Below, piece by piece: positions 4,001-59,300 of a DNA stretch of 64,000 bases. The notes under the pieces are model-generated. The model had not been told where the DNA came from, ran no database searches, and saw only the letters and a program-made list of their open reading frames with translations. The stretch comes from Tubulanus polymorphus (lineage: Eukaryota; Animalia; Nemertea): contig NC_134032.1 in NCBI RefSeq assembly GCF_964204645.1, forward strand, positions 10,156,275-10,220,274, given 5' to 3'. Position numbers and translations under genes: made by a program. Position 1 is the first letter of the stretch, and each line of letters starts with the position of its first letter.

Positions 4001-7000
4001 TGTACTGCTGCCATCACTACTGAAATAACCCTAACTTAATGCTTATCAAAGCTTATCAAAGCTTATCGCAGTGATAACAAGTGGACTTCGAAATATTTAG
4101 ACTATATCTACTTGACTTTCTGTATTGAAATTGGGTTATTTTCGGGTCTTGAAAATGGGGGGGGGGGTAAATCCCTCATAAGGTATTATTGATTAGCATC
4201 GAATTTTCATGAATGGCATTAAGAATTATTGAAAGATTGGACAAATCACTGTTACTTAAAAAAACCTTATTTCTATCTTCTTTAGGGCGCGTATCTAATT
4301 CTGTTTGTATCGGTTTGGTCTCTTAGATTCCTTCGGGTTTAAATATATTTAGCAAATAATAATGGGTTCACAATGAAATTGAAATTGCGTCGAAATGCTG
4401 TAAATTTAGATCACCGATGCCCTATACTGAACCCTGTTGAGAGGCGTCGAAGTGCATGGAATTATACGGGGTATCCCGGGGGGACCAGTCGCTCAAAAGT
4501 TGAGATAACCGGTGGATAGATACCATAGTAACAATGAATTTTTGAATTTCAACTATTCACTGGTTGTTAACTCTAACCAACTTTTGAACAACTGGCCCAT
4601 AGAATTTCAAAGCCATAAAATGAAGACCTCATGGCTCAGGCTATCCCACTAGATGGCTTGCGTATCAGTAGGACCGCTCAATCCAAATTTGAAAGAAGGA
4701 GTTGTCACTTTCCAGATAAAAACACATTGTTCATACCGGTATTCCCTACAGATTTGAAAAAAATCTTTATGAAAGCATTTGGTCAATGAAGTATTGATAA
4801 TTGCCACCAATTTACTTAAGAATTAAGAATTATATGAAAGAAACGTTGGGAATGTGTAACTTGGGGTGTACGGTAAATCTGAAATCTGCCTACGGAAAAG
4901 GTATAGAGAATGAAATTGGTACATTCAATACAAATGCTGAGTTCAACAACTCTTTTAGTCTTAAAAAATTTTCTTTTCACTGGTATTAACTCTGGCGCGT
5001 GAATGATTCGAAAAGATTTAGCTCTATAATTTGAATTTTCTCGTTGCAGCTGGTTCACAAGCGAATCGTGGCGTTGTACAAAGCGCAGAATAATATTCCG
5101 GACGCAATTTCGAAACTGAACAAATACCTCGAACAGTGAGTAGAATTCATTTTATGCGGCTTCGTATCTCCCAGCGTCCCTGCAACGTGCTTAGATTCCT
5201 TGATAATGCTTTTAAAGGCGCTTGAAACTCCTTTAATTCGAGCGAAATGTCCAAAGTTCAATTTTCAGAAATAGGCTGCTGGGTATTTGAAATGTTTGTA
5301 GTTAAGCTTATATGGGCAGCTACGCCTAAATCGATTCTTTCCCCTATTAGACGGTTCCCGAATTAGAAAACAAGTTGAGGTAGTGTAAAGGGTAGAAATT
5401 GCTTAAAAAACCACCTATTCAGTGGTGTTTTAAGCAAATTTCTATCCCTCCTATCCTCTATTCCGAGATAAACAGTACCAATTTAGGAGCAGTCGACAGT
5501 AATCGGGATATATGAAAGTGAAGTTCCATTATAAAACTCCATGAAAACTCCTTGTATCCAGGAATGAGCTATCTGCGAGAACCCTGAATCCATAGGATGC
5601 ATCTTTCATTTTTCCTCGTTCAGTAGCTATGGAGATTTGGATAGCTTTGCCCCGGTAAAAGTATGCAAAATCATCAAATACTTAAAAAGGCACGAATCAG
5701 GTAGAAATTTTTTTACTTATACCATGAAGTTGCCTTTCCGGAAACGGTTTTTTTTTGCGTACAAAATAAAAATGACGAAAACGCCCTTGTCGGAAAAAAG
5801 CGGTTTTTTTTTTTTGCCGCGAACGTCATCGCGATGACCTTCGACCAGACGACGTCCATCCGTCCGTCCGAGATGCATTTGTGGATGACGACGTTTTGTT
5901 TTTCGCGTTCCCAGGGTCGAATTGAACGTTGAACCCTGTTGGTAATATTATCGGGTGTGGTAGGCTCTTAGTCGAATTTAATCAGACTAACAACACTTGT
6001 CTCCTCTGGAGGCGTTGATATATAGCTAATGAACGTTTCCTTGTTGTCGCGCCAGCGGCTAAAAAAAATTTGTTCGGCTGCTGTTGTTTTGCGTCTGTGT
6101 TTTAAGGGGATTACATTTTTTTTATCGGAGGCAATCGTTTGATCGTATTCAAAACAAATTATGTTAAGACGTGTTGAGGTTCACAGCATGAAAATCCATT
6201 TCTAATTCGGCGGTTAATGCTTAAGATAGGTAAGACCTAGCAATAACTTGGGATGAAACCAGTTTAAGCTCGTTTGGGTCCGGTTTGGTAGTTGAGACCG
6301 GGCTGTTATAGCTCATTTTGGTCCATTTCGAAAGAAGACACTTGATATATGGCCAGTCTTGTAGGTGCTTGACGTTCGTTTTATTTGAGCACGAAGCCCG
6401 TAACTCTTTTAAAGCTCCTTCATTTTAGAGATTTAGGCGGTTAGAAACCTTTTGTCTAGTTAGTAGTTGTAACTACCTAAACCAAGTTTATTTATTCTTA
6501 ACCCTTTCAGTGCTGACTAATTAATACCCTATAGTGCTGGAGATAATTTGAAAATTCCACCCTAGTGTGTTGAACAACAGGAATACCACTGTAGTGCGTC
6601 TACACCGCGGTGCGGTGTATCGTTAGTTACTAGTATTTAACTATGTTTGACACGTGCTGCCATTTTTCAAGAGAGATAATTACTAATTACTAATCACATC
6701 AATACACCGCAGTGCGTGTACTAGCAAAATCTATCACTGATTTATACACCGCACTGGGGTGTAGACGCACTTAAAGGGTTAAAGGATAGAAATTTTCTTA
6801 CAAAACCACCAAATTCATGGTTTACAAAGATTAACAGTACCGATTTAGGAGGAGTAGTCTACTAATTGGGCTATGAAAGTGATGCAGACGCTTTCTTGAA
6901 ATTTGAAATTTTTGCCTTTTTGAAACACCTTCAGTCCAGGTATGACTGGTCTGTAAGTATCACGGACCAGAGAATGTCCAAATCATAAGATTCTTCAGCC

Positions 7001-13000: not shown

Positions 13001-16000
13001 CTCCTCTCTCTCTCCCTGTGTCTGCTGTTTCCGTGCAGTGATAAAATGACCATCAAAAACAGATTGATCGAAGCATTGATCTCTGATTGCCGCGTGTGGG
13101 TACGTCATGCGGAAAATATAAACATGTTTTTGTCACCCGTCGCAGTGAACTAGTGCACTCTCAACCTCGACATACGCACTCCTCTCCAAAACAACTAGGC
13201 AAAACACGGGGAACTGATTTCTCTTTGGGCAAAACAGGCAAAACCTGGGGAACCGATTTTTCTTAGGACAAAACAGGCAAAACCTGGGGAACCGATTTCT
13301 CTTTGGGTAAATCAGGCAAAACGTGGGGAACTGATTTCTCTTTGGGCAAAACAGGCAAAACACGGGGAACTGATTTATCTTAGGGCAAAACATGGGGAAC
13401 TGATTTCTCTTAGGGCAAAACAGGCAAAACAAGGGGAACCGATTTCTCTTGGGGCAAAACAGACAAAAACGCGGGGAACTGATTTCTCTTAGTGCAAAAC
13501 CGGCGGAATTTGATATATCTCCAGAAAACATAGGGAAATTGTATTTTTCCCCACAAACCATGTTTTATTTGTCCGTTTGAAAAAAGATTGTGTTTAATTT
13601 AAGAGTTCGCAGATAAGCGTTGAACGGTCGGCCGGTGACGTAATGTCATTTATAATTAGTATAGTTGAGTTGACGCGTGCGACTCAAATTAGAATTAGCT
13701 CCACCTAAGGGTGATCTTAATGTCGCACGTTTCGCTTTGATTTACTGAACGCACGTGATTTGATTTCTGGCTTATCAGACGATCAGTCAGGTGCTCGCGT
13801 TTGAACTTTGCTTAACGACTGCCCTGAAATCAATTTTTAGAAATTAAAAATCTATGGTGATAACGCGCTCAGACTGGTCCTTTAAAAGTACATAAGGGTG
13901 ATCGTTGCTGATGGTTATCGCTGGTCTGAGATCGGTCCTTACCTTTAGGGCCTAAGACTGGTCGTTAATCTGGTCTTGGAATTGGTCTCGGATGTCATTA
14001 ACGGGGCTAAGACTGGACTCAAGATCTTAAGTCATTAAGTTATTACGAAGTTGAGACTGGCCTTCGGTTCGATAAGTCATTACTGAGCTAAGACTGGTCT
14101 CAAATTAAAGGGATGGGCTGAGTCTGGGTCTCACGTTGAAGTCATTACTGAGCTAAGATTGGTCTCAAATTAAGCTAATGGGCTAAGACTGGGTCTCAAG
14201 TTGAAGTCATTACTGAGCTAAGATTGGTCTCAAATTAAGCTAATGGGCTAAGACTGGGTCTCGAAGTCATAACTGAGCTAAGACTGGTCTCAAATTAAAG
14301 TAATGGGCTGAGACTGGGTCTCACGTTGAAGTCATTACTGAGCTAAGACTGGTCTCAAATTAAACTAATGGGTTAAGACTGGGTCTCACGTTGAAGTCAT
14401 TACTGAGCTAAGACTGGTCTCAAATTAAAGTAATGGACTGAGACTGGGTCTCACGTTGAAGTCATTACTGAGCTAAGTTTGGTCTCAAATTGAAGTAATG
14501 GGCTGAGACTGGGTCTCAAGTTGAAGTCATTACTGAGCTAAGATTGGTCTCAAATTAAGCTAATGGGCTAAGACTGGGTCTCGAAGTCATAACTGAGCTA
14601 AGACTGGTCTCAAATTAAAGTAATGGACTGAGACTGGGTCTCACGTTGAAGTCATTACTGAGCTAAGTTTGGTCTCAAATTGAAGTAATGGGCTGAGACT
14701 GGGTCTCACGTTGAAGTCATTACTGAGCTAAGACTGGTCTCAAATTAAAGTAATGGACTGAGACTGGGTCTCAAGTTGAAGTCATTACTGAGCTAAGACT
14801 GGTCTCAAATTAAAGTAATGGACTGAGACTGGGTCTCAAGTTGAAGTCATTACTGAGCTTAGACTGGTCTCATATTAAACTAATGGACTGAGACTTGGTC
14901 TCAAGTTGAAGTCATTATTGAGCTTAGACTGGTCTCAAATTAAACTCATGGGTTAAGACTGGGTCTCAAGTTGAAGTTATTACTGAGCTAAGACTGGTCT
15001 CAAATTATAGTAATGGACTGAGACTGGGTCTCAAGTTGAAGTCATTACTGAGCTAAGACTGGTCTCAAATTAAAGTAATGGACTGAGACTTGGTCTCAAG
15101 TTGAAGTCATTACTGAGCTAAGACTGGTCTCAAATTATAGTAATGGACTGAGACTGGGTCTCAAGTTGAAGTCATTACTGAGCTAAGACTGGTCTCAAAT
15201 TAAAGTAATGGACTGAGACTGGGTCTCAAGTTGAAGTCATTACTGAGCTTAGACTGGTCTCATATTAAACTAGTGGACTGAGACTTGGTCTCAAGTTGAA
15301 GTCATTACTGAGCTTAGACTGGTCTCAAATTAAACTCATGGGTTAAGACTGGGTCTCAAGTTGAAGTTATTACTGAGCTAAGACTGGTCTCAAATTATAG
15401 TAATGGACTGAGACTGGGTCTCAAGTTGAAGTCATTACTGAGCTTAGACTGGTCTCAAATTAAACTAATGGGTTAAGACTGGGTCTCAAGTTGAAGTCAT
15501 TACTGAGCTAAGACTGGTTTGAGATTGGTCTCAAATCAAGACATGGGCTAAAACTAGTCCCCTTTTTCTTGATCTATAAAATCTAAGCATAGACTCTAGT
15601 AACAGACCCTCTGTTTTAGATAACGTTTGAACTATCAGTCAACGTTAGATCTTGGAATTTTCTGACGCGGCTATTCTGACGTCTGCTGCTGCGGGTGCGG
15701 TTGTCAGTTTTCTCTCCGGTTCCATTCTCAGAATCGTTTGACGTGTCGAGAAAACGTCGTATAACCGACATGTCGCTTAATGAAATTAGTCTTGTACGTA
15801 ACACGCGGTCGCTGCCTTTAAACCTTTCGATTGTTGACGAGATCGAACACCGTTCAAGTAGCTGTGGAAATTGAAAATCCACTAGGTGGCGCTAGTGTGA
15901 ATTCGGTGTCGCAATGAGGAACTGGTGAAGCGACTGTAAAAGTTTAGGTTCCACATGTCAGCCTTACATGTTAGACTTTTAGCAGGATGCCCGTCTGCAG

Positions 16001-19000: not shown

Positions 19001-22000
19001 TATATCGAATATCTGGACGATCAGAAACTGGGAGAACGATGATGAATAATTGAATACATAGGCTACATATTTATACCCACATTTACGTCGACGACCGATA
19101 TTTCCTCCCATCCCTTCATCGGTTTTTTCCTGCAGGAAATACGAGTTCGTCTATTCAGAATTTACCATCACATGCAATACTTCCTAATTCGACAGAAAAC
19201 CCGACGCGATAATCATTCGCAGCAATCATTTAGAAAATGAACAAACGAATTCTCCTAAAAACCGTCGCTCTAGTTCCGACTAATTACGATTTACGCGTAT
19301 TCACGAAAAAAAAAATGAAAGTTGTCAGTAGCGTTCTGACGAGAAAACTATTCAGAGCAATCATTTAAAAAAAACAAATGAAAAACAAAATAACTGTATC
19401 ATTACTTCATTTAGCTGTATCATCTTTCTCGACTGTCAATATTCATGTGAATGTAAGTTCAATGAAAAATGAATTATTGTTATTATTCGAAATCAATTCA
19501 GATAGGTCTCTCCCCTCGTAATAAACTCATATCTATGCATATTCAGGGTCCCTACGACTCCTTGATTCCTTGAAAACTCCTTCTAAACCAAAAATATTTT
19601 TCAAGCTGCTTGAATTTGAGCGCAATGCCCAAAAGTCCTCCTTGAATTTTGAGCAATTGGAAAATTGAAAAATTTCTAGGTTTTAGGAATAGTAGTAGGC
19701 TTAAATTAGTTAGTAAGTAGTTAGTAGTCATAGGCCTTATACACACCTTGAAAAGTCCTTGAATTCTGGAATTACTGATTGGTAGGGACCGTGAATTATC
19801 ATTTGAATACGATCCGCTACATAATCCTCGTTCAAAGTGTCTTATCGGTGTATCTTAGTGTTTGTCCCGTAATTCCCCGCCCCTAACCTTATCTATATTC
19901 TCACTTATGGTTGCCTGCATTATCAATCGTATTTGTTGTTTTTGTGTCTCCGATGATGAAGTTTAAAAATTCGATTAAAACTTCAAAACTGTCGGAATGA
20001 ATCATTTAAACTGCTTGGTTTTGATGCCTGCTATTTCTGAAATACTGAGATCGATATCGGTCCACCGGTCAAAAAACAAATTCCCAGGGAAAACCATCGA
20101 TCTAATAATAATTTCCGACTATTATCGAATCGGATGTATTCCCCCTCCCCGAAAGAAGTTGCCGGCAACGTTTTGACAGGCAAGCCATTCAGAAATTTGA
20201 AAAACAAAAAAAAATTCTCATTATAAACCACTGCTCATTAAAATCTTTTCCGACTATTTTCAACCAGCGTGTATTTCCCCAGAAACAAGTTTTACGGTAT
20301 TTTTTTGTTCAACGAGGATATCGTTCTATTGAGTAGCATGTAAATGACTGTAGTGTGTGTAGTGTCCTCGATTGGTTTATCAGCTGGCAGCGCGTGTGAC
20401 GTAGGCAGCCGCGAGCTACCTGCGTGATTAGTGACTAACTGCGCGGTTATAAAAGGTTGATTCATCGCCGCGCTGCGCATACACACACTCAACAGCTCTC
20501 TCAGGCACCGTAGTAGCGAAAACATCTCCGGAAAACTCTGGGAAAAACCACGCTCTTAGTTGTTTCTTGTTAAACTGTCAAAATACGGAAGAAGAACAAG
20601 TGATTTGTTAATTTCGTTGAGGACAATTTCTGGAACTTTAGTTGGTTTAAAAGCTGGTTTTTGGAAATAGTTTCTGCTGTTTTGCATTGCATTTGGCAGC
20701 ATCGGACATTTTTATACTACATTCAGTGAAGGTAACTGCGAAGAAGGTGTATTTTACTATCCAGCAATCTAATTCGAAAACTTTTAGGGAAGCTTTTTTT
20801 TCCTTTATATTATTGGATACTGCGAGAACATAATCGTAAAGTCGTCATGTTGTCGGAAACTGAGATTAACGTAAACCGCTTCACCGAACCGCGCAGGCGT
20901 CGTAACGCGATGGCGAACATTTTCTCGGGTTTGCGCCCCGCCGACGTCGAATGTTTGTACGCCGTTTCGAAGTTGGAATTCGAAGAGCGCCAGTTGCGAA
21001 CGTCCTCGCATAGCGAGGAAGGCGAGGCTGGTTTGTCCGTCCAGCAGACCGATGAGGCCAATCCGTCTGCACAGGAGACTAGTCCGTCTGCCTATGACTC
21101 AAGTCCGTCTGCTCAGAAGACGAGTTCGTCTGCCTATGACTCCAGTCCGTCTGCTCTGGAGACAAGTACTTCTGCCTATGACTCCAGTCCGTCTGCTCTG
21201 GAGATGAGTCCGTCTGCCTATGACTCCAGTCCATCTGCCCGGGAGACCAGTGCGTCCGAAGCGGAGTCGAATTTGATCGCGTGCGTCGTCGTGAGTCGTT
21301 TGAACATCGACAACGACGCGGTGCGCGACCGTACGCGGTTTCACCGGCGTCGCAACGGCCTCGCGAACATTCTTGACCCGTACAATGTCGGGCACCGCTT
21401 CGAACTGAACAACCAGCATGCGTTCCACGCCGTCGTCAACACGACGTCGTCGATGTGCCGGTGAGGTACGATTCCTGTGGCGAATCCGCGTCGTTTCCTG
21501 GTGCTAAAAAACGACCCGATTTCGTGGTTTGACAGTTCGCTGAAACGGAAAACTACTGCTAGTTACGCTTTACGAGTATTCGTTTAAAACTGTACAAAGA
21601 TAACTAACTGGTAAAAACGCCGAACAAACTTTCAGGGAATTAAAAACCGCAGCTGTTCGTGAGGATTTCGTAAACTTTATGTAGTGTTCAAACGAGTTCT
21701 AGTCAATAGTTTCTAACTTAATAGATCTGACGAGAGTTCTACTTATAGGACTTGGTTTGTATAGGAGATATTATGTTATGTATATAGCTAAATCTGAATG
21801 GTTACTGCTGGTATTTCGCGACGAGGGACGTTGCTTGATGATTTAACTTTTTTTTTCATTTCCCGCCTTCTTTTTCAACCGCCTCTCACTTTCTCTCCCT
21901 ATGCTCTTTCCCACTTCTCACCGCTCTCAATATTCACCGCTTGAACGTTCATTGAACTCTCTCGCTCTTCGGCAGGTGAAAAACATCTCAAGGCAACTTG

Positions 22001-25000
22001 TACTCTCTCTCTCTCTCTCTCTTTCTCTAAGTAAAACCCCTCTAACAACAGCTCTGACAAGTCGTGACCGTCAGTTCAACCCAGTGTCACATCCAGCAAT
22101 GATCGATATCTTTGCAAGAAGCTTTTACTTCCGTATATGGTGAAAGTGTAGGGGCTTAATGTATTCGCTGATTGATCTGCAATTAATTGGCTATTATTAT
22201 AATGTTAATCAAAGTGTTCATGAACCGGTTAAAGTTATCGTGATTGAGAAGGTCGTCATTAGTAACTATTCATAATTTTACTGAACTATTGAAGTTACTG
22301 AGAATGAAAAGGTCGTCATTAGCAACTATTCATAATTTTACCGAACTATTGGAGTTACTGAGAATGAGAAGAATGTCAATATTGATAACTGATTAAAACT
22401 TTATTGAATCGTTGAATTCGTCTACAATCTTCTTTCTAGCGAATCATCGGGAGACATTGTGAATGGAGAAGCCCGGCGTTGTCCTTAGTAACTCATGATA
22501 GTTTTACTGAATCGTTGAAATCATTTGTCATAGAATTTTCACTTGTTGACGTGAGTTCACTTATTAAGAACATGCATGAAATATCTCGACAAAAGTTTAA
22601 AACCGGTTTGAGTTTTTCATGAATCAAAAATTGTTTTTCGAACTGCCTTTCTCCCTTGAATAGAAATGACTTCATTCGCCGACCTTTGTTCAAATTTGAC
22701 CTTCAACTCGCCCCCCCCCCCCTGAATGTAATTGTAAATACGAACGTGGGTTTTTCCGCCCAACGTGGTTGCAAAACACTTTCGAAAAACATGATTGCCA
22801 AATTTTGTGTATTTAGATTTAGAAAAAAAAACTACTTTTAATACAGTATCTATGATGCCGATTTAGTAATTAATTTGATTTATTTAATTAGTCAATTAAG
22901 AAATTTAATTAGTCAATTAAAAAAGTTAGTTAAAGTTAGTGCTACGATCAAGAGAAAAAGGGACCATTGTTGGTATATATCGTGTATTGTTATTGTTAGT
23001 GTAAATAAGTTGAATTGTTTATTGTATGAAAAAGAGCTAAAATGACGAAAAACATTATTTGTAAACAAAAATAAATTGATACAGTTTCTAATATTATATT
23101 ACGAGTTTGGAGTTATCTTTCAATCAATGGAATGCAGTTGTCGGCTTGCTGGTTTCCCCGATCCACAATGAGGCATCCTGGACAACCCTTACGCCTAACG
23201 AGAAATGATCTATCTAAGGATGGTATAGTTTGGTGCCTGGGACTCAGTATCGCACTTGATTAGATTGAATAGAAATTGATTTATTTTAGTGCAGTCTTTA
23301 TTTACTCAGCTGCCGAACTCGACCCGTTTCCGTTATTCTCATACCACCCTTTCAGTGCGGTGTATAAATCGGTGATGTATTTTGCTAATACATCGCATCA
23401 TGGGGTACACCGGTGTAGTTTGTAATTATTTCTCTTTTTAATATACGAGAATTCTCGAGAATTACGGACCCATACCGCTAGTGCATAAAGAACTATCTAT
23501 GGTGAAATATCATTTACTTACAATGCATCGCACCGTGGTGTAGATGTAATATAGCGACATGCATGTTACCGAAAATACTTTGTAGTTTTGCTATGATCCA
23601 ATGCATTGTGGTCGAATTTTTCAAAGTGTTCTTCAAACGATCTCCTGCACTTTAGGGTAACAGTTAGAAAGCATTGAAACGGCTTTAGAATTTTGACTTT
23701 TTACGTTGGAAATGAACTGATTTTATGAATGTAGTAATAGCAGGTAGATCATATCGGTCCATCCATCTGCAGCGGCAGGCGGATGAGAGACACACTCCAC
23801 CCTTCCGCCAGTGTCACGTCAGCAGCAGTAAATGACTGAGAGACTCCCCGCTTCCGCCCTCCTCCCTGCACTGATGTTCTCTATTGCTACTCGCGTCGTT
23901 GTCACACCGGTGTTTTATACCTCAATAAACTGGTCGTGTCTGTCTGTTTAATCGATTACCTGCGGACATTGTGACGTCAGTTATATCAGCAATGACGGAA
24001 ATCTCGACTGTCTCTCGGTCTGTGTATACATATTATACCCGTCATCACTGATCCCCTATGAAATCTTCAAACTCTCTTATTACTGATACCAGCCTCCATA
24101 AATCTCGCCTTGATATCATAAAATTCTTTATTGATGAAAATGGCTACCTCCTAAAATCATCTTATGACATCATCAAACTCTTAATTGATGAAAATGGCTT
24201 CCTCCTAAAATCATCTAATGACATCATCAAACACTTTATTGATGAAAATGGCTACCTCCTAAAATCGTCTTATGACATCATGAAACTCTTTATTGATGAA
24301 AATGGCTACCTCCTGAAATCATCTTATTACATCATGAAACACTTTATTGATGACGTTGACTAAACCTCCTAACATCCCCTCATGATATTGTCAATCGCAT
24401 TCGATAAAGACGGCAGCCCCCAAGGATCCCCTATGACCCTATCAAACTTGTTCAACAGAAAGCTGCCTCCATAAATCCCCATGTGACATCTTCAGCATTG
24501 AACATCTTTAATGATGATATAGTGACCTCCATAAATCCTATTACCTCATCAAATTTGCAATTATGCTTAATTCTAAGTACTGATGTAAACTATTTTGGTG
24601 TTAATTTTTCTAGTCACTTCAACTACTTGTTTAAGAATAATTGAATTCCTACTGTTGTTCAATGATTATTTCCGTTTCGTATTTTCTCACAGATTTATGG
24701 CGGATTACGAGGCGTGGATGGAATTGTGCGATTTGTACCTGTTAGAAATGGACTACAGCAAGGCCGCGTTTTGTATGGAAGAGGTACTGATGTCGAACCC
24801 TCATAATCATCTGTACCATCAGCGTTACGCCGAGGTACGTAGATTTTTCCTCTCAAACCGATGAGTTTGATGTATCGAAAATCAATCGATTTTTTCACGG
24901 TTTCCTATTTCTGGGGAAAATTTGCAGACATACCGCTACATTACCAGAGCTGCCAACTGTTCCTGATTTTCAGTATTTGTAATTATTTTATGACAAGAAA

Positions 25001-34574: not shown

Positions 34575-36010
34575 ATAAAATGTTTATTAAAACATATAAG
34601 AAATATTTCGGGTGGTTATACTACCACCCTATGACTTGCCAAATACAAACACAGTATTAATACATGAAATAAGACACGAATCGCTGCACATTACATTATG
34701 GGGACTAGAGCACTGACATAACTTGAAAGAAGTTTATTATGGGGGCTGAAACCATTATTGAGGTTGACAGAACGATCGGAATTAGTGGTAATAAAAGCAG
34801 ATTCAACTATATGTCGTTTAGTGCGACTGCTGTTGGGAAAAATAATATTGGCTCCAGAAAAATCAAAATTGTGTCCGGTAACCAAAGAATGAGACTACCC
34901 CCCTTTCTAATTTAACCCTATTGAATACATCTCGTTTATGTTCTTTAATACGTTCCTTAATATTCCTACCAGTTTCCCCAATGTAAAAAAGGTTACAATC
35001 AGAACAGTTAATTTTATAAACTTCACAATGGACATTAGTGCTCAGATTGTTATTGGAGCAAAAATTAGAAATTTTGTTATTATACTTGAAAATTAAAATA
35101 GTATTTAAATGACGAAGAGCCGGTTTGAATTTGTCGAGGCAAGGGACAAAGGGAACTATAATTTTGTTTTTTGGTTTAGACGAGTCAATAGGATCACGGG
35201 GTTGAGCAGGAGAGAAAAATTTGTGAAGGGCTTTCACTAAAATCTTGTCCGGGTATGCAAGTTTTTTAAAACTGGATTGAATATGTAAAATCTCATGATC
35301 TAAAAAGTTTTTATCACAAATCCTATAAGCCCGAAGGAAGATACCTTGAACAACGGCCACTTTAAGGTAAGTTGGAGTGAACGAGAAGAAATGTAGGTAG
35401 GATTCACAGTTAGTAGGTTTACGAAAAACAGAGAAACCTAATCTCGAATTAAAATTATGTATGAGAACATCCAGAAAGGACATTTTCCGTCAACTTCCCA
35501 CTCAAAGGTGAACTTCAAGGAAGGATAAAGGGAATTAAGATATGTCAAGAAAGATTCAAGGTTAAAATCAGTTGATACTAAACATAAAATGTCATCAACA
35601 TACCTGAGCCATAGAAGAGGTGCAAACCCAGTGTATAGGGGTACAATTTCCGATTCAATGTTCTAAGAAGAAGTTAGCTAAAATCGGCGAGAGGGGGTTG
35701 CCCATTGCGAAACCATATATTTGCTCAAAGAAAATACCATCAAATTGAAAATAGGCTCTTCTGGCACATAATTCTAAAAGGTCAATGAGACAGTTAATTG
35801 AGACAGGAAAATTCAAATTTAAGGATGGAAGTTTACGTTTAATGAAATCTAACGTTGGTTCCAGAGGGATGTTAGTGAATAGAGAGACTGCATCAAAAGA
35901 GATGAACTTGTTACCATTGGGGGTAATGTGACGTAATCTTTGTAATAAATCCATATTATGTTTGATATGAGAACCAGAGAATGACCCAAGTAAGGGAGAA
36001 AGCATGGTTT
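34575..36010 (-). mobile_element. 5'-truncated, frameshifted Penelope-like retroelement (RT + GIY-YIG endonuclease)
   Basis: FISFDAVSLFTNIP, GFAMGNPLSPILAN, WLRYVDD (~35590-35612), FLDVLI, and YKINCSDCNLFYIGETGRNIKERIKEH, spread over broken frames. Confidence 0.9.
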
Positions 36011-41291: not shown

Positions 41292-44200
41292 ATGGAGGTT
41301 GACCGCGCTCTATCGGAACTAGGTGGTCGTCTGGGAAGATGGCAGATTACTCGATCCACAGTGCTTTGTGCTCTGCTCTACGTGGCTATCGTATTGACAA
41401 ACCTTTCAATAGTATTTGTAGGTAAGAAAACAACTGAAATCAATCATTCTGATGAAGAAATCATTCGGAGTTTTGTATGAGCAACAAATTTCCTGATAGT
41501 CGGGTCTATGGGGATGGTTAATGATAAAATTGGGGAATTTGTATGATAGAATGGATAGAATATAGGTGGTGCCTCCAAGAAAAAAGTAAACAAGGAGATG
41601 ACTTGAACATGGATGTATTGAGCTCTCATTTGAATGCTTTTAAATGGTCGTTTCCGTGGAAGGGTTGGGGAAGGGAATTCCACGCAAAGTCTCACAAAAG
41701 CACGTCCTCAAAGTAACTTCAAGATTTATGGAGGCAGCCATTTCATCTAGAAGTGTCTATAGGACCAACGTTATCACAAAGAAGGGCGATTTGTGGCGGC
41801 GGACCCTAGGTCAATTCATGATGTCGTTGGTGGATTATGGAAGCAGCCATATTTGATAATTGTTGAATATGTCTGTACAGGTTGGAAACCTCCGCATCAC
41901 TGCCGCCTACCGGCGGGTAATATAAATATGTCGCAGGGGATTCCTTTAAGTGATAAACTGGAGTTCAGCCAGTGTACGATGTACGAGCCGAATGTAGACG
42001 ACAGAAACTTGACCGTCTACACCAAACACGTGATATCGTGCGCAGACGGAGTTGAGTTCGCAAACGAGGGTTACCAGGGTATCGTATCCGAGGTCTGTAT
42101 TTAGAGTCATCTCGTCACTTACTTCTCTGAAATATCTTTTTCATCTTTAACGATCATTCGCTATCGATATTCTCGCCACTTCTGCCACTGCTGTGAGGGG
42201 AGGGAGTTCACATATATACGCTAACAAAGAAAGTTCGTAATAGTTGCCGCCAGGCAAAAGAACAAAGCCTGGGCACTAAGATTTAGTATGGCCCGTTCCT
42301 TGCTGATGGCTGCCAAGAGAGGTTTCCTTGTAACTAACAGTTCCTGTCAGCAGAGATCACCTCGACGACTGACACCAATCGTTATTTCCACATCAGGAGG
42401 TGCCCCACCTCCTGATGAGAGTGAATGGAGTTCACTATTGTTTTCGGAGCGCCCCACAAAGCAATAAAACGGAGCATATGTATGGGACTTTTTATTCCAC
42501 GCATTGAACCCGACACAATACTCCATGTTATCCAACTACGTAATTATGCATGCATGAAATATGTTCATTAGGGTGCTTACGACGAGCCGATACACGATCG
42601 CTCCCTTACTCCCTAGCACCCCCTTGCGAATCCCCGATTGGCGCGGTTTCCAATTCCGGATTGTATTTTTTTGTACATGTAGTTCTTATTTTTGTTCCTC
42701 TTTCAGCTGAATCTCGTCTGCGAACAGAGCCACCTACCGGCCCTGTCGCAAACCTTGTACTACCTGGGTGTGTTATTCGGTTCGTTGTTTTTCCCGACCT
42801 TGTCCGACTTCCTAGGCCGTAAGATAACGCTGGTATTCTGCGCATTAGCGACGGCAACGTGCGTCCTGACCACCGCCCTAGCCGTATATAGCGTATACGC
42901 CTTCATGGCTCTGCGGTTCCTTACAGGAGCATGCGCCCAGGTAAGAAGTTCATCAATCAAAACCTCCAGCCAATTTTCGATAGTAAAAACTAGTAATAAT
43001 TGTACTCTTTCGGGCCTCATTTTTTACTAATCCCGAGCATATACGAACGGCAACGCATTTGAACATTTTGAAATCTGCATTTCTTCACTTATTACTTTCG
43101 ATATGCTGTCTAGGTTACGGGGGCCGTATTCGTGAATGAGGACCTTTCTCTTAAACTTAAGGACAGACTTACGTGACACGTAGGTTACGGGTGTTTCGTG
43201 AATACGGATCCTGGCTCACAGAGAAGAGCACCTCAATGACTAATTCCACGGAATGTCGCTGATTTATTTTAGGGCACTTCTCTGGCTACGATGACTCTAA
43301 ACACGGAACTGTTCGCCAGTCGTTATCGCTCATTCGCGCCTATTTATCAACACTTATTCTGGTCGACTGGAATTATGATCCTTGCTTTGTTGGGATACCT
43401 CATCACCAACTGGCGCCATCTATTGATAGCGATAAGTCTATATGGTTTCTTATCGATAGTCACGATATGGTAAGCCGTTTTCTCTTTACATTGTTTTCCA
43501 TATTCACAAGTCTTAAGCAAACTGTCAATTTACTGCCATCATAGAATTTTGTAATTGTTTGCGTTGTTATGGGCCTCATGATGGTATTGGATCTATGGAG
43601 ACAGCCATCTTTTGGGGTAAAGTAGGGGTATTTTATGATGCTATGAAGGAAAATTTTCTGAGCCATATTTTCTGAGAGCAGGGTCTGTCAAGGGCGATGT
43701 TGATGAGTGTATTATGTTCATATTTCCAGTACACTATGGAACTGGATAATTTATAGAAGCCTTATGGGTCCGTCGATAACTACTTTATAGATTATCTAAA
43801 TATACTTTAGGCTGGTCGATGAGTCGATCCCATGGTTGGTAGCGAACGGTCGCGGCAAACAGGCTTTACATATTCTGAGAAAAGCGGCGAAACTGAACGG
43901 CGTTGAGTTGTCAGACGATGCCGTGCAGGACATACGCAGCGCCTCCAAGCGGGCAGTTAATCAACAAGATGTCGGCACGGACGCGGACAATTTGACCCGC
44001 GTCGGACGAATCAAACACGACGTACGACGACTTCGGGTACAGCTTCAGCGGAAGTTCACTTGTCGCTGTAGTTCCGCTGCCGCTCAGCATCAGAAGGAGA
44101 TCGAGACCGACTCGGAAGTGGGCGTGAAAGACGTCTTCCGAAACACGCGTTTGAGGACGTACGCCTTGGTCTCGATGTTGATATGGTTAGTAAAAAATCC

Positions 44201-47200
44201 GATCTCATGAAAATTAAAGGAAAAGAATAGCAGGGAATTAAAATACAGTTCAAGGCATGGATTTTAATGAAGGTTCTGGAATAAATAGAGGCTGGTGCAG
44301 CAGTAGAAACAAATTAACCATTGACTTGGCACTTCAGAGTGTGTGCCATGCCATCAAAACATTACTTTTTTTCGGAAATCCCCGTCCCCAAATAACCTTC
44401 TCATTAAGTCCGGTGCACATTTTGGCGGCTTTACCCTGGCCAGTGGAATGGCATGATCAAATGAATGCGCTAAAAAAATTGGCCAATCCTGTGTAATCGG
44501 AAAAAGTGGAATATTCTACTGCCGGTTTGGAAAATATGCACCGGGCATATGCATAAGCTATCGGTAAAAATCGTTTTGAAGTCTGCACTGCAATGGATAT
44601 CAATGAATCTGGATCAGCAGAGTAACAACCATGATGAGCCCTATAGTCACATATCTACGTAATGATATGAGACGAACATGAAATAATCTACATTTCATTT
44701 GTCTATACATGTAGCACGAAATCGTGTTTCATAATTTACATATGTATATTACATTGCCAATTCTATTAGATCAATGAAAAGATTTGTATGCGGTTCATTT
44801 TTGAATGAACGTATGATGCCTATACGTTGACGCGCCATATGCTTCAACAATTCGCGGAAGAATTGTTAGTAATTTTTTTTCGCGTGTGTCTTGATTTTGC
44901 GCTCGTCGTAATAGTTTGTGGAGAATTGCCATACATACGTGTTTTACTGTCATCAAGGCGACGTCCTAGCGTATTAGGTATCAGAAATTATTCATTATAT
45001 GAATATCATTTGCACTCTACAGTAGAACTCGCTTGATTCGGATTTTGCAAATTCGGATTTTCATTTAATTCGGATGAAATATTTAGTCCCTTTAACCGGG
45101 TATTATTATTCATAATTCATATTTTACTTAATTCGGTGAAATCTAAGCAGTCCCTAGTCACTCGAATTACCAAGCGAGTTTTACTGTATTAGCCAATTTT
45201 CCAATTTGAAATCTAAGTAAAATTCGACCTTGACTGCGCTCCTTATTCGAACATTTTTCTCTATCTGACAATAGAACGCATTTTATAGAAATTAAATAAA
45301 GTACCTCGCTTTCCCCGCTTGTGCCTGGCCTTGTTAGAGTTTGAATTGGAGTTAGATTAATAAGTCTAGTGTTGTATTGTATTTTCGGTAGGTTATTATC
45401 GATATAATGTAACTGATCCATTCCAGCAAATTTGATTATTTGTTGAAATAGGATTGTCGCCCTGATTCATGAGTTGGGATCAGCTGTCGCAGAGTTAAGA
45501 GCTGAATCGAAGTTCAACGAAATGATCCAATTATCAACCTCTATCCCTCCCATTGAATTTTGTTTATCGGCGAAAGTATGAAAATGCCTTTTTATTATTT
45601 GCAGGGTGTCTACGAGTTTCGTTTATTATGGCTTGACGTTAAGCTCGACTGCGATGGTCGGCAACAGATTTCTGAACTTATTTCTCAGCGGCCTGGTTGA
45701 ATTTCCCGCCTACATAGTAACGCTATTTCTCATAGAAAGGTGAACATTTTCTCCCCTTCCCCAATCTTTGTTTTGTCGTCAAAATATCATATAATACAGT
45801 GACAATAAACCTCGGTCGAAACGAGATATTTCTCTGATTTAACATAAAGTCCGATTTTTGGATCGGACTTTCGCTTAGCTAAGGCTATTTTTGCCGGTCC
45901 CAGTTTGTCCGAGGCAAAGTTTTCGACTATAATGTTGATGTAAAGTTAGGCTATTTCAAAACTATTCCTTGAATACAATATTCAGGAGGTATTGTTTTGC
46001 ATTTTTTTCAGACTAGGTCGAAGGGCTTTAGCTTCGGCCTTGTTTATTACCACTGGTGTATCCATCCTAATAACTGCGTTTATTCCAAAAACGACGGGTA
46101 GGTGTCGGTTTTAGTTAATCAATCGATTTCGCAATTGGGTTTGATTTTTCTGGCTGCTGCCTAATCTAATACATCGAGATTTTGGAAATAACTATATTAC
46201 AAGGTTGAAAATCATTTCGTCCATTTCTTTCATTGTTAGCGTATCGTTTTAGCGAGTGGTACGAGTTTAATAGCTGTATCTATGACGTGTAACGGTATCG
46301 GCAAATTCTCTATCAGTGCCGCCTACGCAGTTATATATCTATACGCCGGTGAAATATTTCCTACCAATTTCCGGTAAGATTGCAACTATTCGAATATAAT
46401 TTCACCGTTAACATTAGTCTGATACATTAAAACTTGCTCGATTCGTGATTGGAAAGACCGCCATTGAAGACTAACTTATTATCCAAATGACGACTACACT
46501 TTGTTTGAATTGGTTATAAAAATTGTGACTCGTAGATAGAAACGATTGAAGTAATGTTCCGACTCAAACGGTGATGACGAGTTGAATGAATATTTTTATT
46601 TTTTTTTAAATATGATTCTGTTCATTTCACTGATCAAACAGCTCATCAAAATGAATGTTGCTTTTCTTTCTCGAAAAAAACCCCAATTATCGACACTTTA
46701 AAACACATAATACACCGCATTGTACGCAAATAACCTTAAGTTGAAAGCTGGCGTTCGCAACCTTATCCCTAGCCAGGAAGTATGTTCAAAATGCAATATT
46801 CGGTTTCTTTTAAGTAACCGAGGTGTTGGTATGTGCTCAGCGGCAGCTCGTATAGGCAGTATGGTCGCTCCATTCTCCGCCTACGTGGTAAGTAATTTGA
46901 GCGAATATCGTCAACCTTAACGCCTAGCCCAGAGCTTATTCAAAACACGTTGAAAGACTTAAGCAAATAATATTTTCAGGCACAAATCCGTCCCTGGTTG
47001 GTGGCCGTTATATTCGGTAGTGTTGGTATACTGAACGGACTATTGACACTAGCACTACCCGAAACTCGAGGGCGCCCTCTACCGCAAACACTGGCCGACG
47101 TCCCATCTCGCGAGCCACTCAGTTGCCAGTGCCGACGCCGCAGCTCGGAGCCACCCGACTACGAGTTCGAGCCGGTCGCCGAAAAACCGGAATTGAACCA

Positions 47201-47871: not shown

Positions 47872-50778
47872 TTGATTAATATTCTAGCTATAAATGAGAT
47901 ATTCCATGAATCTGCTAATAGTCTAGCTGTAATGATAAATGGTGGTTTTTTAAGCAGAAAAAATAAGGACAAATACGTGAATAACTGGGGTTATCGATTA
48001 TTAGAGCTGTGTAAAAATCATAATATATTTGTAGCAAATGGAAGATTAAGAAAAGATCAGGGCGTTGGAGAATTTACTTGTGTAAAGGGCGTAAATCATC
48101 ATGTTGTGGATTATATTTTAATGTCAGCTGAACTTTTCACGAAATGCTCTGATTTTAATGTTATGGACTTTGACCGTATACTGTCCGATGTTCATTGTGC
48201 TATTTATTGTACTCTAGCCTCAGATTGTAATATTGAAAGGAATGAGTTTCTACCACCCAGAGAGAAGGGCAAAATCCGGTGGTCAAAAGATAAAGAGGGT
48301 CTCTTTAGGAATGCTATTGACCAACAGAAATTAAGTCAGTTAAATCTTGATCTAAACGATAACAAAATAAATTGTGAAACTGCGAATAATATTTTAACGG
48401 AGACATTGATTGGAGCTTCCGAACGTACAATGGGTAGAAAAAAGATTGTTTCAAAAAATAATCGTAAAAAGCCGTTTTTATCTGACCCTGAAGTTTTAAA
48501 ACACCGAAAATGTTATAGGCGAGCAAGAAAGAGCTGTAAAAGACACCCAACACCACAACGAAGAACACACATGAATTTGGCTTATAGGAAATACAATTTG
48601 GCTATTAAAAAAGCGAAACAAAAATACCTTTTGGATCAAAATAACCTTTTGAAAAAACTGTCGAAAACCGATCCAAGAGCTTATTGGAAGTTCTTTTCTA
48701 AAGCCAAACAAAATGTCTGTAAAGCCTCCCTATCTGACCTTTTTCATCATTTTTCAAAACTAAATCAAATACCAACAGACGACGACGATGATAGTAATTA
48801 TTTTGATGTAAATAACTTTATCGATGTTGACAATGACGACGCCCTCAATCGAGTCATTACGGAATCGGAAATTTCTAAATGTATAAAGAAACTTAAGAAT
48901 AACAAGGCACCTGGATGTGACGAGATACTGAACGAATTCCTTAAAACCTCTGAAGATATAATAATGCCCACTTTAGTCAATCTCTTTAATAAGGTCCTGG
49001 AAACTGGGATTATCCCTGAGAACTGGACAATTGGTAAAGTTACACCTATTTTTAAGAACAAAGGCGAGCCACGTGATCCGGACAATTATCGGGGAATCAC
49101 ATTACTGAGTTGTATTAGTAAGTTATTCACAAGTATATTAAACGATCGTCTCCATGAATTTCTTGAATCAAATGAACTCCTGAATAGAAATCAAGCCGGA
49201 TTTCGAAAAAATCATAGCATTTTGGATCACATTTTCACCCTTCACTCAGTAATTGACACCCTTTTTAGTAAGAAGCGAAAGCTCTATTGTATATTTATTG
49301 ACTACCAAAAGGCATTTGATACAATATGGCGAAAGGCACTGTGGCACAAACTTATCTCAACAGGTATCACCGGAAATATCCTAAACGTAATTCATAATAT
49401 GTATAAACATATCAAATCCATGGTTCACGTGCAGGGTCAATCCTCAGGTTGTTTTCTTAGTAACATAGGATTGAGACAAGGGGAAAATTTATCGCCAGTG
49501 CTTTTTTCTATATTTGTCAATGACCTTGAGGCTTCATTAATTAAAAGTGGTTGTCAAGGGATTTCATCTCCCTTCGAAAACGAAGATCTATGGGTTCAGC
49601 TACTAGTTCTGCTGTACGCAGATGATACGATCTTATTGGCCGATAGTGCAAGTGCACTTCAGAAAAACCTCGATATGTTGGTCGCTTATTGTAAAAGGTG
49701 GAAATTAGTAATCAATATTAGTAAAACTAAAGCCGTTGTATTCGAAAAAAGGAAGTCTATTAGACAACCCGTATTGAATATCGATGGAGTATTAATCGAA
49801 ACTGTATCTGAATTTAAATATTTAGGTGTGCTTTTTAATTATACAGGAAACTTTGCAAAATGTAAAAAGCTGATTTGTGAACACGCAAAGAAGGCGCTTA
49901 TATTTGTTCTTAAGAAAGTTCAACATTTTTCTCTTGACTTTGATACTGCTTTCCAAGTCTTTGACGCAATGGTTGGATCGATTTTAACATTTGGTTGTGA
50001 GGTGTGGGGATTTGGAAATTTTGATGTTATTGAAAAAATTCATTTAACATTTTGTAAATATCTGCTAAGCCTCAAGAGGTCAACACCAAATTTGATGATA
50101 TACGGTGAGACAGGAAGGTTTCCATTTGAAATTCGTATCAAAGTTCGTATGGTAAAATTTTGGGGACACTTGATCCTGCATGAAGAGACATACTCTGGTA
50201 AAATGTACCGCATTCTTTATAATAGTCATTTAAATGGTTCGCAAAGTAAATGGATATCCTGTATCAAATCAATCTTACAGAATTGTGGTCTTGGTAATAT
50301 ATGGTTGGAACAAACTTTTCCGAATATTCCCTACCTTGGGGAACTCGTAAAACTTAGATTAGAAGATCAATTTAAACAGACATGGCATGGATCGATGGTA
50401 CTATCCTCTAAATTAGATACGTATAGAATATTTAAAACTGATTGGGGACAAGAAAAATATCTTTCATCACTACCACGAAGTTTAAGAATCTCACTATGTA
50501 GATTTAGATGTTCCAACCATAAATTACCAATAGAGACTGGTAGATATGAAAACAAACCACGGAACGAACGAGTTTGTAATAAATGTAACGAGAATACTAT
50601 TGGGGACGAATATCATTTCATACTGAAGTGCGAATTTTTCAACGCTTTTAGAATTTTGTATATACCTAACAGATATAGAATTGGCGCAAATCATTATAAA
50701 TTCAAGCAATTGCTCAGTAATGAAAACCTGTATTACAGTCTATCTAAATACATTACGACTGCTACACGGTTGTTATAG
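47872..50778 (+). CDS. LINE ORF2: C-terminal part of AP endonuclease, reverse transcriptase, C-terminal Cys/His domain (968 aa open)
   Basis: VDYIL...SDVH, NYRGITLLSC, FIDYQKAFD, GLRQGENLSP, LLYADD, FKYLG, CNKC...DEYHFILKC; no internal stops. Confidence 0.9.
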   Translation: MINILAINEIFHESANSLAVMINGGFLSRKNKDKYVNNWGYRLLELCKNHNIFVANGRLRKDQGVGEFTCVKGVNHHVVDYILMSAELFTKCSDFNVMDFDRILSDVHCAIYCTLASDCNIERNEFLPPREKGKIRWSKDKEGLFRNAIDQQKLSQLNLDLNDNKINCETANNILTETLIGASERTMGRKKIVSKNNRKKPFLSDPEVLKHRKCYRRARKSCKRHPTPQRRTHMNLAYRKYNLAIKKAKQKYLLDQNNLLKKLSKTDPRAYWKFFSKAKQNVCKASLSDLFHHFSKLNQIPTDDDDDSNYFDVNNFIDVDNDDALNRVITESEISKCIKKLKNNKAPGCDEILNEFLKTSEDIIMPTLVNLFNKVLETGIIPENWTIGKVTPIFKNKGEPRDPDNYRGITLLSCISKLFTSILNDRLHEFLESNELLNRNQAGFRKNHSILDHIFTLHSVIDTLFSKKRKLYCIFIDYQKAFDTIWRKALWHKLISTGITGNILNVIHNMYKHIKSMVHVQGQSSGCFLSNIGLRQGENLSPVLFSIFVNDLEASLIKSGCQGISSPFENEDLWVQLLVLLYADDTILLADSASALQKNLDMLVAYCKRWKLVINISKTKAVVFEKRKSIRQPVLNIDGVLIETVSEFKYLGVLFNYTGNFAKCKKLICEHAKKALIFVLKKVQHFSLDFDTAFQVFDAMVGSILTFGCEVWGFGNFDVIEKIHLTFCKYLLSLKRSTPNLMIYGETGRFPFEIRIKVRMVKFWGHLILHEETYSGKMYRILYNSHLNGSQSKWISCIKSILQNCGLGNIWLEQTFPNIPYLGELVKLRLEDQFKQTWHGSMVLSSKLDTYRIFKTDWGQEKYLSSLPRSLRISLCRFRCSNHKLPIETGRYENKPRNERVCNKCNENTIGDEYHFILKCEFFNAFRILYIPNRYRIGANHYKFKQLLSNENLYYSLSKYITTATRLL

Positions 50779-56356: not shown

Positions 56357-59300
56357 ATGGAAGTTGATCGCGCTCTATCGGAGCTAGGCGGTCGTCTGGG
56401 AAGATGGCAGATTACTCGATCCACAGTGCTTTGCGCTCTGCTCTACGTAGGCATCGTATTTGCAAATCTTTCAATAACATTCGTAGGTAAGTGAAAACTT
56501 GTTATGTGAATAGAGTTTTCAAAAACCATATTTAGTGACATCGATGTCATTGGGTGTTTTGTCGGAAAGCATCTTTCCCGGAAGGGTCTTCAGGTTTACG
56601 ATTTTCGGGAAGCGACTTGTAAATAGCGAAATATGATCTAAAGCGCTCTCCAGAAACACCTTATTACTTGAACAGAAATGTCTTCAGCTCTCATTTGAAT
56701 GCTTTGAATTTGAATTCCACACGATGGTGCGCCCAAAAGCACGTCCTCCAAATGATGTCAAGGCATTTCTTCTGGAAGCGTATATAGACATTACGTTATC
56801 ACAACGAGGTTGGCAGACCATAGGCCAATTGATGAAGTCGTTGGTGGATCACGGAGGTAGCAATGTTCATTTGTTGGTTATTATTGTACAGGTTGGAAAC
56901 CTCCACACCACTGCCACCTACCGCCGGGTAATAAAAACATGTCGCAGGGGATCCCTTTAGATGATGAACTTGAGTTCAGCCAGTGTACGATGTATGAGCC
57001 GACTTTAGACGACAGGAACTTGACCGTCTACACCAATCACGTGATATCGTGCACAGACGGAGTCGACTTCGCAAACGAGGGTTACGAGGGTATCGTATCT
57101 GAGGTCGGTATCAAAGAGTCATCACGTCACAAACTTCTCTGAATTCTCATTTTTTATCGTATTTTTGATTGAAATTCTCGTTAGAGGTCGCTTCTGTCAC
57201 AGCTGTGGGGGGAGGGAGTCCATACATATACACAGGATGTTTGTTTCAATCACCAGATAAAAAAAGGAAAGCTAGAGGAACTGTAGTTCAGTTAAAATGC
57301 TTAGCCTGAACACCAAGCTTCACGGTTTGTTCCCCACTGATAGCTACCGAGGGAAGTTGCCTTGTAACCAGCGGTTCGTGTCAACCAAGTTGACATTCGG
57401 GTAACAGAGAGACCCTATTCGTCTGTTATTTAACGGAAGAGTGATATAGTAACAGCTGTTAGTGAAAAGAGATCACCAATAAGATGATAATAGTTGTCAC
57501 ATTTCCCCACAAAGCAGTGACACGGAGCATATAGAACACACTTCGTTATTCCTATTATTGAATCCGATACAATAGTCCAGATGATACCACCAGACGCAAT
57601 GATAAACGTGTGGAAGCAGAGACGAATTTATCGAAATCACAGCCCTACCTAAATGGGAAGAGTTAATCATGAAGATTTTCGTTGCAATGAATATGGCCGA
57701 AGTCTGTATGCGTGACCGCCATTTTCTTGCTTGGGTAAACTCAGGGTTACCGTGCTCTTGAGCGCGGTGAGGCATGTGCCGTACCCAACATTGAGTATAC
57801 GCTTGGATAAATGTATCGAGTACTATACTTGAAGGGGTAACTCGGAATTGCGAATGTTTCGATAAATTCGCCTTAGTTTATTAGCTCGCTTCCGACGATA
57901 CCCGATTGCCACAGTAGCATTGTTTGATTCCTCTGTGTTGAAGACTTTAACCTTGCGCCCCCTAGTGAATCCCCTTTTGCAGCAGTTTCCAATGCTGGAT
58001 TGAATTTTCGTACATGTAGCTCATAATTTTGTTCCTCTTTCAGCTGGACCTCGTATGCGAACAGAGCCACCTACCGGCCCTGTCGCAAACCCTGTATTTC
58101 CTGGGTGTCTTATTCGGTTCGTTGTTTTTCACGACCTGGTCCGACTTCTTGGGCCGTAAGATAACGCTCATATTCTGCGCCATGGCGACGGCAACGTGCG
58201 TCTTGACCACCGCCCTAGCCGTATATAGCGTGTACACCTTCATGGCTCTGCGGTTCCTTACAGGAGCATGCGCCCAGGTAAGAAATTCATGACACCTTTT
58301 TGACTAATTTCAGGGCATTTCTCTGACAAATCGTCAGGACACCTTTCTGACTTATTTCAGGGCACTTCTCTGACTAATGCCAGGGCACGCAGGTGTACAT
58401 TTCTGATTAATTTCTGAGCTCCTTTCTGACTAATTTCAGAGCACCTCTCTGATTTATTTCATGCCATCCAGTACTCGACTAATTTCAGGGCACTTCTCTG
58501 GCTACGATGACTCTAAACACAGAACTGTTCGCCAGTCGTTATCGCTCATTCGGACCTATTTATCAACATTTGTTCTGGGCGATTGGGATTATGATCCTGC
58601 CCTTGTTGGGATACTTCATCACCTACTGGCGCCATCTATTGATAGCCGTAAGTCTATACGGTTTCTCATCAATAGCTACGATATGGTAAGCTGTTATTTT
58701 CCAGATTTTTTTCCATAATCCTAATTCTTTATTAAGAAAGCAATCAGTCGACTCATTGCCATGAAATTTTGTGGTTCAACTAATAGGGATATTAACGAAG
58801 ACAGCTCTTTTTGGGTAGAGCAGGGGTAATTTGATGATGTTAGGGGAATTGGAAATCATCTCAGGCAGGGCCTATAGAGGGCGAATCTTGCGAGAGAGGC
58901 CCTTTTATGTGAAGTACGCGATATGGTACTGGCCGCGGAATTTAGGAGAATTTATAGAAGCCATGTTTCTTAGAAGGGAATGTAACAACTTAATCTAAAT
59001 ATTCTTTAGGCTGGTCGAAGAGTCGATCCCGTGGTTGGTAGCGAACGGTCGCGGCAAACAGGCTTTACATATTCTGAGAAAAGCGGCGAAACTGAACGGC
59101 GTTGAGTTGTCAGACGATGCCGTGCGAGATATACGCATCGCCTCCAAGCGGGCAGTCAATCAACAAGATGTCGGCACGGACGCGGACAATTTGACCCGCG
59201 TCGGACGAATCAAACACGATGTACGACGACTACGGGTACAGCTTCAGCGAAAGTTCACTTGTGACTGTACTACCGCTTACGATGCCGCTCATGATGAGAA

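Follow-up and report, generated by a model that had tools for sequence, protein, structure and literature searches.

An intronless gene nested in an EMC2 intron of Tubulanus polymorphus may encode a multi-site pseudosubstrate inhibitor of PKA

A 205-aa open reading frame (ORF) lying in an intron of the EMC2 gene of Tubulanus polymorphus contains two stretches reminiscent of the pseudosubstrate site of PKI proteins, and a sequence-only reading of the locus had taken the product for a double-headed, PKI-like inhibitor of PKA, naming transcription of the ORF and conservation of its motifs in relatives as checks. The locus thus raises the questions (i) whether the ORF is a gene in its own right; (ii) whether its product is a PKI, built of two PKI-like modules; and (iii) what its repeated motifs most probably do.

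The window analyzed (the whole stretch of 64,000 nucleotides) contains EMC2 exon 6 at 5050–5135 (+ strand), with AG/GT ends and an EMC2-like translation, and exon 7 at 24693–24834 (+), the translation of which matches Pfam TPR_EMC2 (E 3.4e-10) and which RNA contigs show spliced to exons 8 and 9. Further EMC2 exons, read singly, lie at 1049, 1476, 1881, 3142 and 3633. Intron 6, bounded by these two exons, is 19.6 kb long and holds the ORF at 20847–21464 (+), on the same strand as EMC2. Both the location in intron 6 and the lack of an intron in the ORF are as the sequence-only reading had them, the latter being confirmed from the sequence and from unbroken RNA contigs. The same intron carries a 65-nt satellite (14074–15518; 22 copies, 91% matches), and further arrays have units of 39 nt (13197–13504) and 54 nt (24111–24353). 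Elsewhere in the window we noted a long open non-LTR retrotransposon ORF of about 950–970 aa (47872–50778, +; Pfam RVT_1, E 6e-39), a GIY-YIG fragment (34863–35483, −; E 2e-5) that probably stems from a Penelope-like element, and two near-identical exon-bearing stretches (43836–44210 and 59035–59412), which by eye are probably parts of tandem SLC22-like transporter paralogues and which gave no match in a Pfam search.

Transcription was examined in two sequencing runs, X2 and X5, which we took to be RNA because their contigs splice EMC2 exons 7, 8 and 9. In both, contigs cover the gene and span about 20495–23080 without a joint, corresponding to an unspliced transcript of about 2.6 kb, while the unique intron sequence outside the transcript has hardly any contig depth. 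Since the contigs carry no strand information, the orientation was taken from the TATA box, the ORF and the AATAAA signal. The TATA box lies at 20448–20454 (+), and the contigs start at 20495 and 20553, none of them earlier; the unspliced 5′ UTR (20478–20846, +; start site approximate) contains no upstream ATG, the 370 nt ahead of the ORF being free of this triplet. A 5′ UTR intron with its GT at about 20732 was ruled out, as a single contig covers 20495–21923 without a joint. The 3′ UTR (21465–23090, +; end approximate) is about 1.6 kb long and is followed by contigs to 23080, RNA coverage ending at the AATAAA polyadenylation signal (23070–23075, +). An Rfam search of the transcript gave no match. 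Contig depth, itself a poor measure of expression level, is 1300–2900 for the gene and 220 for EMC2 in X2, and 12–15 and 15, respectively, in X5; the roughly tenfold difference between the runs relative to EMC2 fits a variable, sometimes abundant mRNA. A third run with the same species label, X9, has no contig on the window, not even on EMC2 exons, perhaps because another species bears this name or because filtering left a gap; as EMC2 is also uncovered there, this run is silent on the expression of the gene.

Upstream of the TATA box, by about 50 nt, lies a CRE-variant octamer, TGACGTAG (20397–20404, +), which occurs only once in the 64 kb, and a CCAAT box, identified by consensus match only, is found at 20371–20375 (−). 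The identical octamer, in opposite orientation, is located 239 nt before the ATG of LOC141904259, the gene for the relative described below (position 9762 of the sequence of that locus, L001), where it likewise occurs once. The position of this CRE-like element suggests induction by cAMP and hence negative feedback. Together with seven ATTTA pentamers in the 3′ UTR, which are a weak sign given that this UTR is AT-rich, the octamer suggests an induced, short-lived feedback brake.

The allele seen in X5 differs from the window by 21 listed substitutions and no indel within the ORF. Their distribution depends on a 21/42-nt minisatellite (21054–21256, +), unmentioned in the sequence-only reading, that encodes a Ser-rich acidic linker comprising residues ~70–137; without it the protein would be about 140 aa long. 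Outside this repeat there are seven silent and two replacement changes (E14K, D33E), giving a pN/pS of about 0.09 (binomial P 0.0008, uncorrected for transition bias), and both core motifs are unchanged; inside the loosely constrained repeat, five codons have silent and six have replacement changes. The ORF outside the repeat is therefore under purifying selection. A chance ORF or repeat artefact is ruled out by the expression, the allele pattern and the homologues, and the locus is a separate Pol II gene that has no introns and sits inside EMC2 intron 6. Although well expressed, the gene has no product in the protein collections searched, probably owing to its same-strand nesting in an intron.

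The positions given for the sequence features of the 205-aa protein by the sequence-only reading were all recovered: motif 1 at residues 16–25 and motif 2 at 167–175, hydrophobic strings at 37–45 and 147–154, and an acidic tail at 53–62. Their arrangement is another matter. Motif 1 opens what we call a type-A module (residues 16–45; 20892–20981, +), in which a pseudosubstrate-like RRNAM with Ala21 at P0 continues as x-[D/N]-I-[Y/F], with Leu at P+8 and P+16 and a hydrophobic residue at P+13; a short helix, a turn and a longer helix are predicted after the motif, and no helix is predicted ahead of motif 1. Motif 2 is of another, terminal kind (residues 164–177; 21336–21377, +), with the form R-aromatic-x-x-RRNGLA-x-I, with Gly171 at P0, and the second hydrophobic string (residues 144–154 in our delimitation; 21276–21308, +) precedes it. 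Judged from these features, the protein is one type-A module plus one terminal motif rather than two copies of a PKI, and the proposal of two PKI-like modules was abandoned. The chain ends in S-x-MCR (21447–21461, +), which we take to be a possible C-terminal Arg degron or Cys lipidation site. AlphaFold, given a shallow alignment of three sequences, returned a pLDDT of 47.5 and a pTM of 0.18 for the whole protein, and the Atlas model of its Tubulanus relative has a pTM of 0.15; outside the modules the protein is predicted to be disordered, that is, over most of its length.

An exhaustive search with the ORF, dominated by matches to the Ser-rich repeat, yielded one true homologue, P0014 (XP_074648929.1, T. 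polymorphus LOC141904259); the repeat protein P0046, from an ENA contig, was rejected as a homologue on reading its sequence. The Tubulanus relative has 305 aa and five motifs, arranged as four type-A modules and a terminal motif, and shares with the ORF product the hydrophobic string, the terminal motif and the MCR end (40% identity over 57 aa). Its last exon alone contains a 207-aa ORF with four sites. LOC141904259 is situated outside EMC2, with ionotropic-receptor and astacin genes as neighbors, and its product is probably a paralogue of the ORF product, given that repeat families common to the window and this locus are 74–85% alike, as compared with 77–80% for copies within the window. About 4 kb downstream of LOC141904259 lies a degenerate, incomplete copy of the C-terminal part of the family (L001:16896–17000; 92% over 89 nt), in which a stop replaces the Leu after RRNG, and which points to local duplication of LOC141904259. 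Beside the same gene, at L001:13300–19737 (−), a tandem pair of ORFs without introns, each of about 806 aa and with an adhesion-GPCR-like 7-TM end, is missing from the collection's gene list.

A profile search with the modules added a third protein, P0055 (130 aa, from a 1148-nt JGI contig), which has the same two-site layout as the ORF product. It lacks the NES-like string and the S-x-MCR end, and the minisatellite linker is absent from both relatives. When the four Tubulanus modules alone were used to build a model, it gave the ORF 21.1 bits and P0055 34.3 bits, while the best of 6000 shuffles reached 6.7 bits. No further members came from a word-indexed search with the whole ORF (no match), a search with P0014 as query (itself only), ESM Atlas feature searches (no usable match), a fold search with a 43-aa module (generic helix pairs only), PDB sequence searches (nothing, or leucine-rich-repeat noise), a PDB search with module profiles (no match to PKI peptides), metagenome scans (nothing beyond P0055 itself) or a viral scan (no match).

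With regard to the motifs, conservation in relatives was found: R-R-x-[A/G]-hydrophobic is kept in both P0014 and P0055, and nothing in the family is better conserved than the terminal motif. All nine motifs in the three proteins read R-R-x-[A/G]-[L/M/V], and these proteins contain no R-R-x-S/T site. Two such motifs in the ORF exceed chance (shuffle P 0.00035), as do the counts in the other two proteins (<0.00005 and 0.0002), although the nine share ancestry and thus are not nine independent tests, and the comparison covers the three family members available. Most of the nine sites continue as x-[D/N]-I (PKI-alpha has H-D-I), and Lys almost never takes the place of either Arg.

The nuclear export signals (NES) proposed by the sequence-only reading fared less well. 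NES-like strings in the ORF occur at chance count (P 0.24), those of P0014 are also at chance, and P0055 has none, so that these patterns lend nuclear export no support. The string at residues 37–45 fits a class-1b pattern in register and is repeated in one Tubulanus module, its count again being at chance level, while the string preceding the terminal motif aligns with one in P0014 that fits class 1a, like the PKI-alpha NES. Membership in the PKI family was not borne out either. Pfam PKI (PF02827) matches neither the ORF nor its halves, and the best score in the relative, for one Tubulanus module, is 12.7 bits (E 0.16–0.17; gathering cut-off 25 bits).

What, then, do these motifs do? In published work, PKA pseudosubstrates are marked by Ala at P0 that is preceded by Arg at P-2/P-3 and followed by a hydrophobic P+1, the hallmarks by which the PKI motif of Smoothened was revealed (bioRxiv 10.1101/2021.07.05.451193), and RI subunits carry Ala or Gly at the pseudosubstrate P0 (PMC6143667; PMC12608923). 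Because all nine motifs follow R-R-x-[A/G]-hydrophobic, with Ser/Thr never at P0, we favor, at a probability of roughly 0.55, a disordered multi-site pseudosubstrate inhibitor of PKA, a bivalent one being the best reading of the 205-aa protein. At each site the two Arg, the Ala or Gly and the hydrophobic residue would enter the active-site cleft of the free PKA catalytic subunit, and the kinase, its cleft occupied by a site that cannot be phosphorylated, would be blocked as it is with PKI and the RI linker. Single-site affinity would probably be below that of PKI because the upstream aromatic residue and Phe helix are missing; the two to five sites per chain, and a downstream helix that may dock on the kinase, may compensate for this, possibly with more than one kinase bound per chain. 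Expression induced by cAMP would exert negative feedback on PKA.

Other explanations must be weighed against this. The family may represent a repeated invertebrate version of the core of TC1 (TCIM/AVPI1), in which case it would be a disordered adaptor that uses its helix-turn-helix to bind some partner different from PKA (Chibby for TC1), with the Arg residues belonging to that surface or to a nuclear localization signal (NLS). TC1 (PF15063) is the top Pfam match for the ORF (9.1–13.5 bits, E 0.074–0.12) and for the Tubulanus relative (17.5–18.3 bits, E 0.0042 and 0.0022), and by eye human TC1, with the site R-K-K-A-V, aligns gap-free with type A from P-3 to P+17, whereas PKI-alpha is alike only from P-3 to P+4 and at Leu P+16; the stretch downstream of motif 1 thus looks more like TC1/TCIM/AVPI1 than like PKI. 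TC1 is, moreover, disordered, and helical C-terminal parts of it bind Chibby (PMC3506533). All of these scores are nevertheless below the 27-bit cut-off and cover only positions 6–43 of the 75-position profile, with the N-terminal core (basic, Ala, hydrophobic, x-N-I-F, helix; positions 16–43) matched weakly and the half at 44–75 never; P0055 has no match to TC1, and the terminal motif, although the best conserved element, retains the pattern of a kinase site but not the helix. We consider this explanation unlikely as a replacement for the PKA pseudosubstrate reading, with which it would merge should TC1 itself be a PKA pseudosubstrate.

The remaining alternatives are less probable still. The sites may be pseudosubstrates for another basophilic kinase (PKG, PRKX, PKC or a CaMK), and the absence of PKI's upstream specificity determinants from the ORF would agree with this. 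In PKC pseudosubstrates basic residues continue after P+1, whereas P+2 and P+3 in the ORF family are Ala, Asp or Asn, and Arg at P-2 and P-3 with a hydrophobic P+1 is the PKA consensus; thus, even though PKC pseudosubstrates, too, can show R-R-x-A patterns and Inka1 offers a multi-site precedent with its two inhibitory boxes acting on PAK4 (PMC4674680), another target kinase seems rather improbable. It is yet more doubtful that the basic clusters serve a stress-induced disordered protein as NLSs or calmodulin-binding helices, their likeness to kinase sites being incidental: Arg clusters followed by an amphipathic helix are a common arrangement, and the ESM Atlas feature and fold searches assigned the family to nothing known, but an import signal would be no reason for every copy to keep Ala/Gly at P0 and a hydrophobic P+1, and Lys almost never substitutes for the two Arg. 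Least plausible of all is a fusion protein, made by in-frame splicing of the ORF, as an alternative first exon, to EMC2 exon 7. A GT donor (21461–21466) does overlap the final codon and shares the phase of EMC2 intron 6; contigs of both RNA runs, on the other hand, cross 21461 unbroken into the 3′ UTR, EMC2 contigs enter exon 7 unbroken from 422–435 letters further upstream, the joint from the ORF to exon 7 is absent among the joints listed, and the Tubulanus relative ends at the same MCR outside EMC2. As contigs drop rare forms, a fusion transcript would be at most a minor form.

The likeness to TC1 also allows a bolder proposal, to which we give little credence at present: that a multivalent, cAMP-inducible PKA pseudosubstrate family shares its core with vertebrate TC1, that TCIM, and perhaps AVPI1, are overlooked feedback inhibitors or binders of PKA, and that PKI and TC1 descend, as two branches, from a single old module. 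Induction by cAMP is on record for both Tcim and Avpi1 (PMC9346484, PMC12073449, PMC8846505), and a search of the openly accessible literature, subscription papers lying outside its scope, found no link of TC1, TCIM or AVPI1 to PKA. TCIM as a PKA pseudosubstrate is hence a testable, unproven lead, and the similarity to the TC1 core would permit a cheap and direct test of the molecular role of the cAMP-induced, cancer-linked TCIM and of AVPI1. To our knowledge, endogenous protein inhibitors of PKA are few (R subunits, PKIs, Smoothened, PDE7A1 and some others), the stand-alone ones having a single site; if the main reading is true, a stand-alone family with two to five sites would provide a natural setting in which to test avidity and stoichiometric kinase buffering.

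Compared with PKI, the ORF product has R-R-x-A-hydrophobic exactly in motif 1 and Gly at P0 in motif 2. Similarities to PKI include the disorder (predicted here), the R-R-N-A-hydrophobic-x-[D/N]-I core with Ala at residue 21, and, in module 1, Leu at P+16 and hydrophobic residues to P+24 followed by an acidic Ser-rich stretch. However, the Phe at P-11 and Arg at P-6 of PKI are absent, these positions being Asn/Arg and Pro/Phe, respectively, in the ORF, where, as previously noted from the sequence, Phe is shifted to P-9 and Arg to P-5/P-4; PKI offers no counterpart, Leu P+16 apart, to the conserved helix that follows the motif, which is closer to TC1; and the NES-like string, unlike the PKI NES, is not kept across the family. 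PKI, moreover, has one site in 70–75 aa, as opposed to two sites in the 205 aa of the ORF product and two to five in its relatives of 130 and 305 aa. TC1 resembles the ORF family, gap-free by eye, in the basic-Ala-hydrophobic-x-N-I-F core and following helix, is also disordered, and belongs to a vertebrate gene family induced by cAMP, as a CRE-like site may indicate for the ORF gene; yet it has a single copy, with R-K at P-3/P-2, where the ORF family has R-R in several copies. The linkers of PKA RI-alpha and RI-beta resemble the ORF sites in R-R-x-[A/G], in an extra upstream Arg and, for RI-beta, in Gly at P0, but Pfam detects neither an RI docking domain nor the two cAMP-binding domains in the ORF, and lacking these, its binding would not be released by cAMP. 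The N-terminus of PDE7A1 carries two pseudosubstrate sites in one chain (PMC6143667), which are part of an enzyme, whereas the ORF product stands alone, and Inka1 targets PAK4 and has Pro at P0 in place of Ala/Gly. As PKIs of invertebrates are already known (PMC4674680), as are PDE7A1 and Inka1, neither invertebrate origin nor the possession of two sites is new in itself; what appears, on balance, to be new here is the multi-site version of a putative PKA pseudosubstrate brake.
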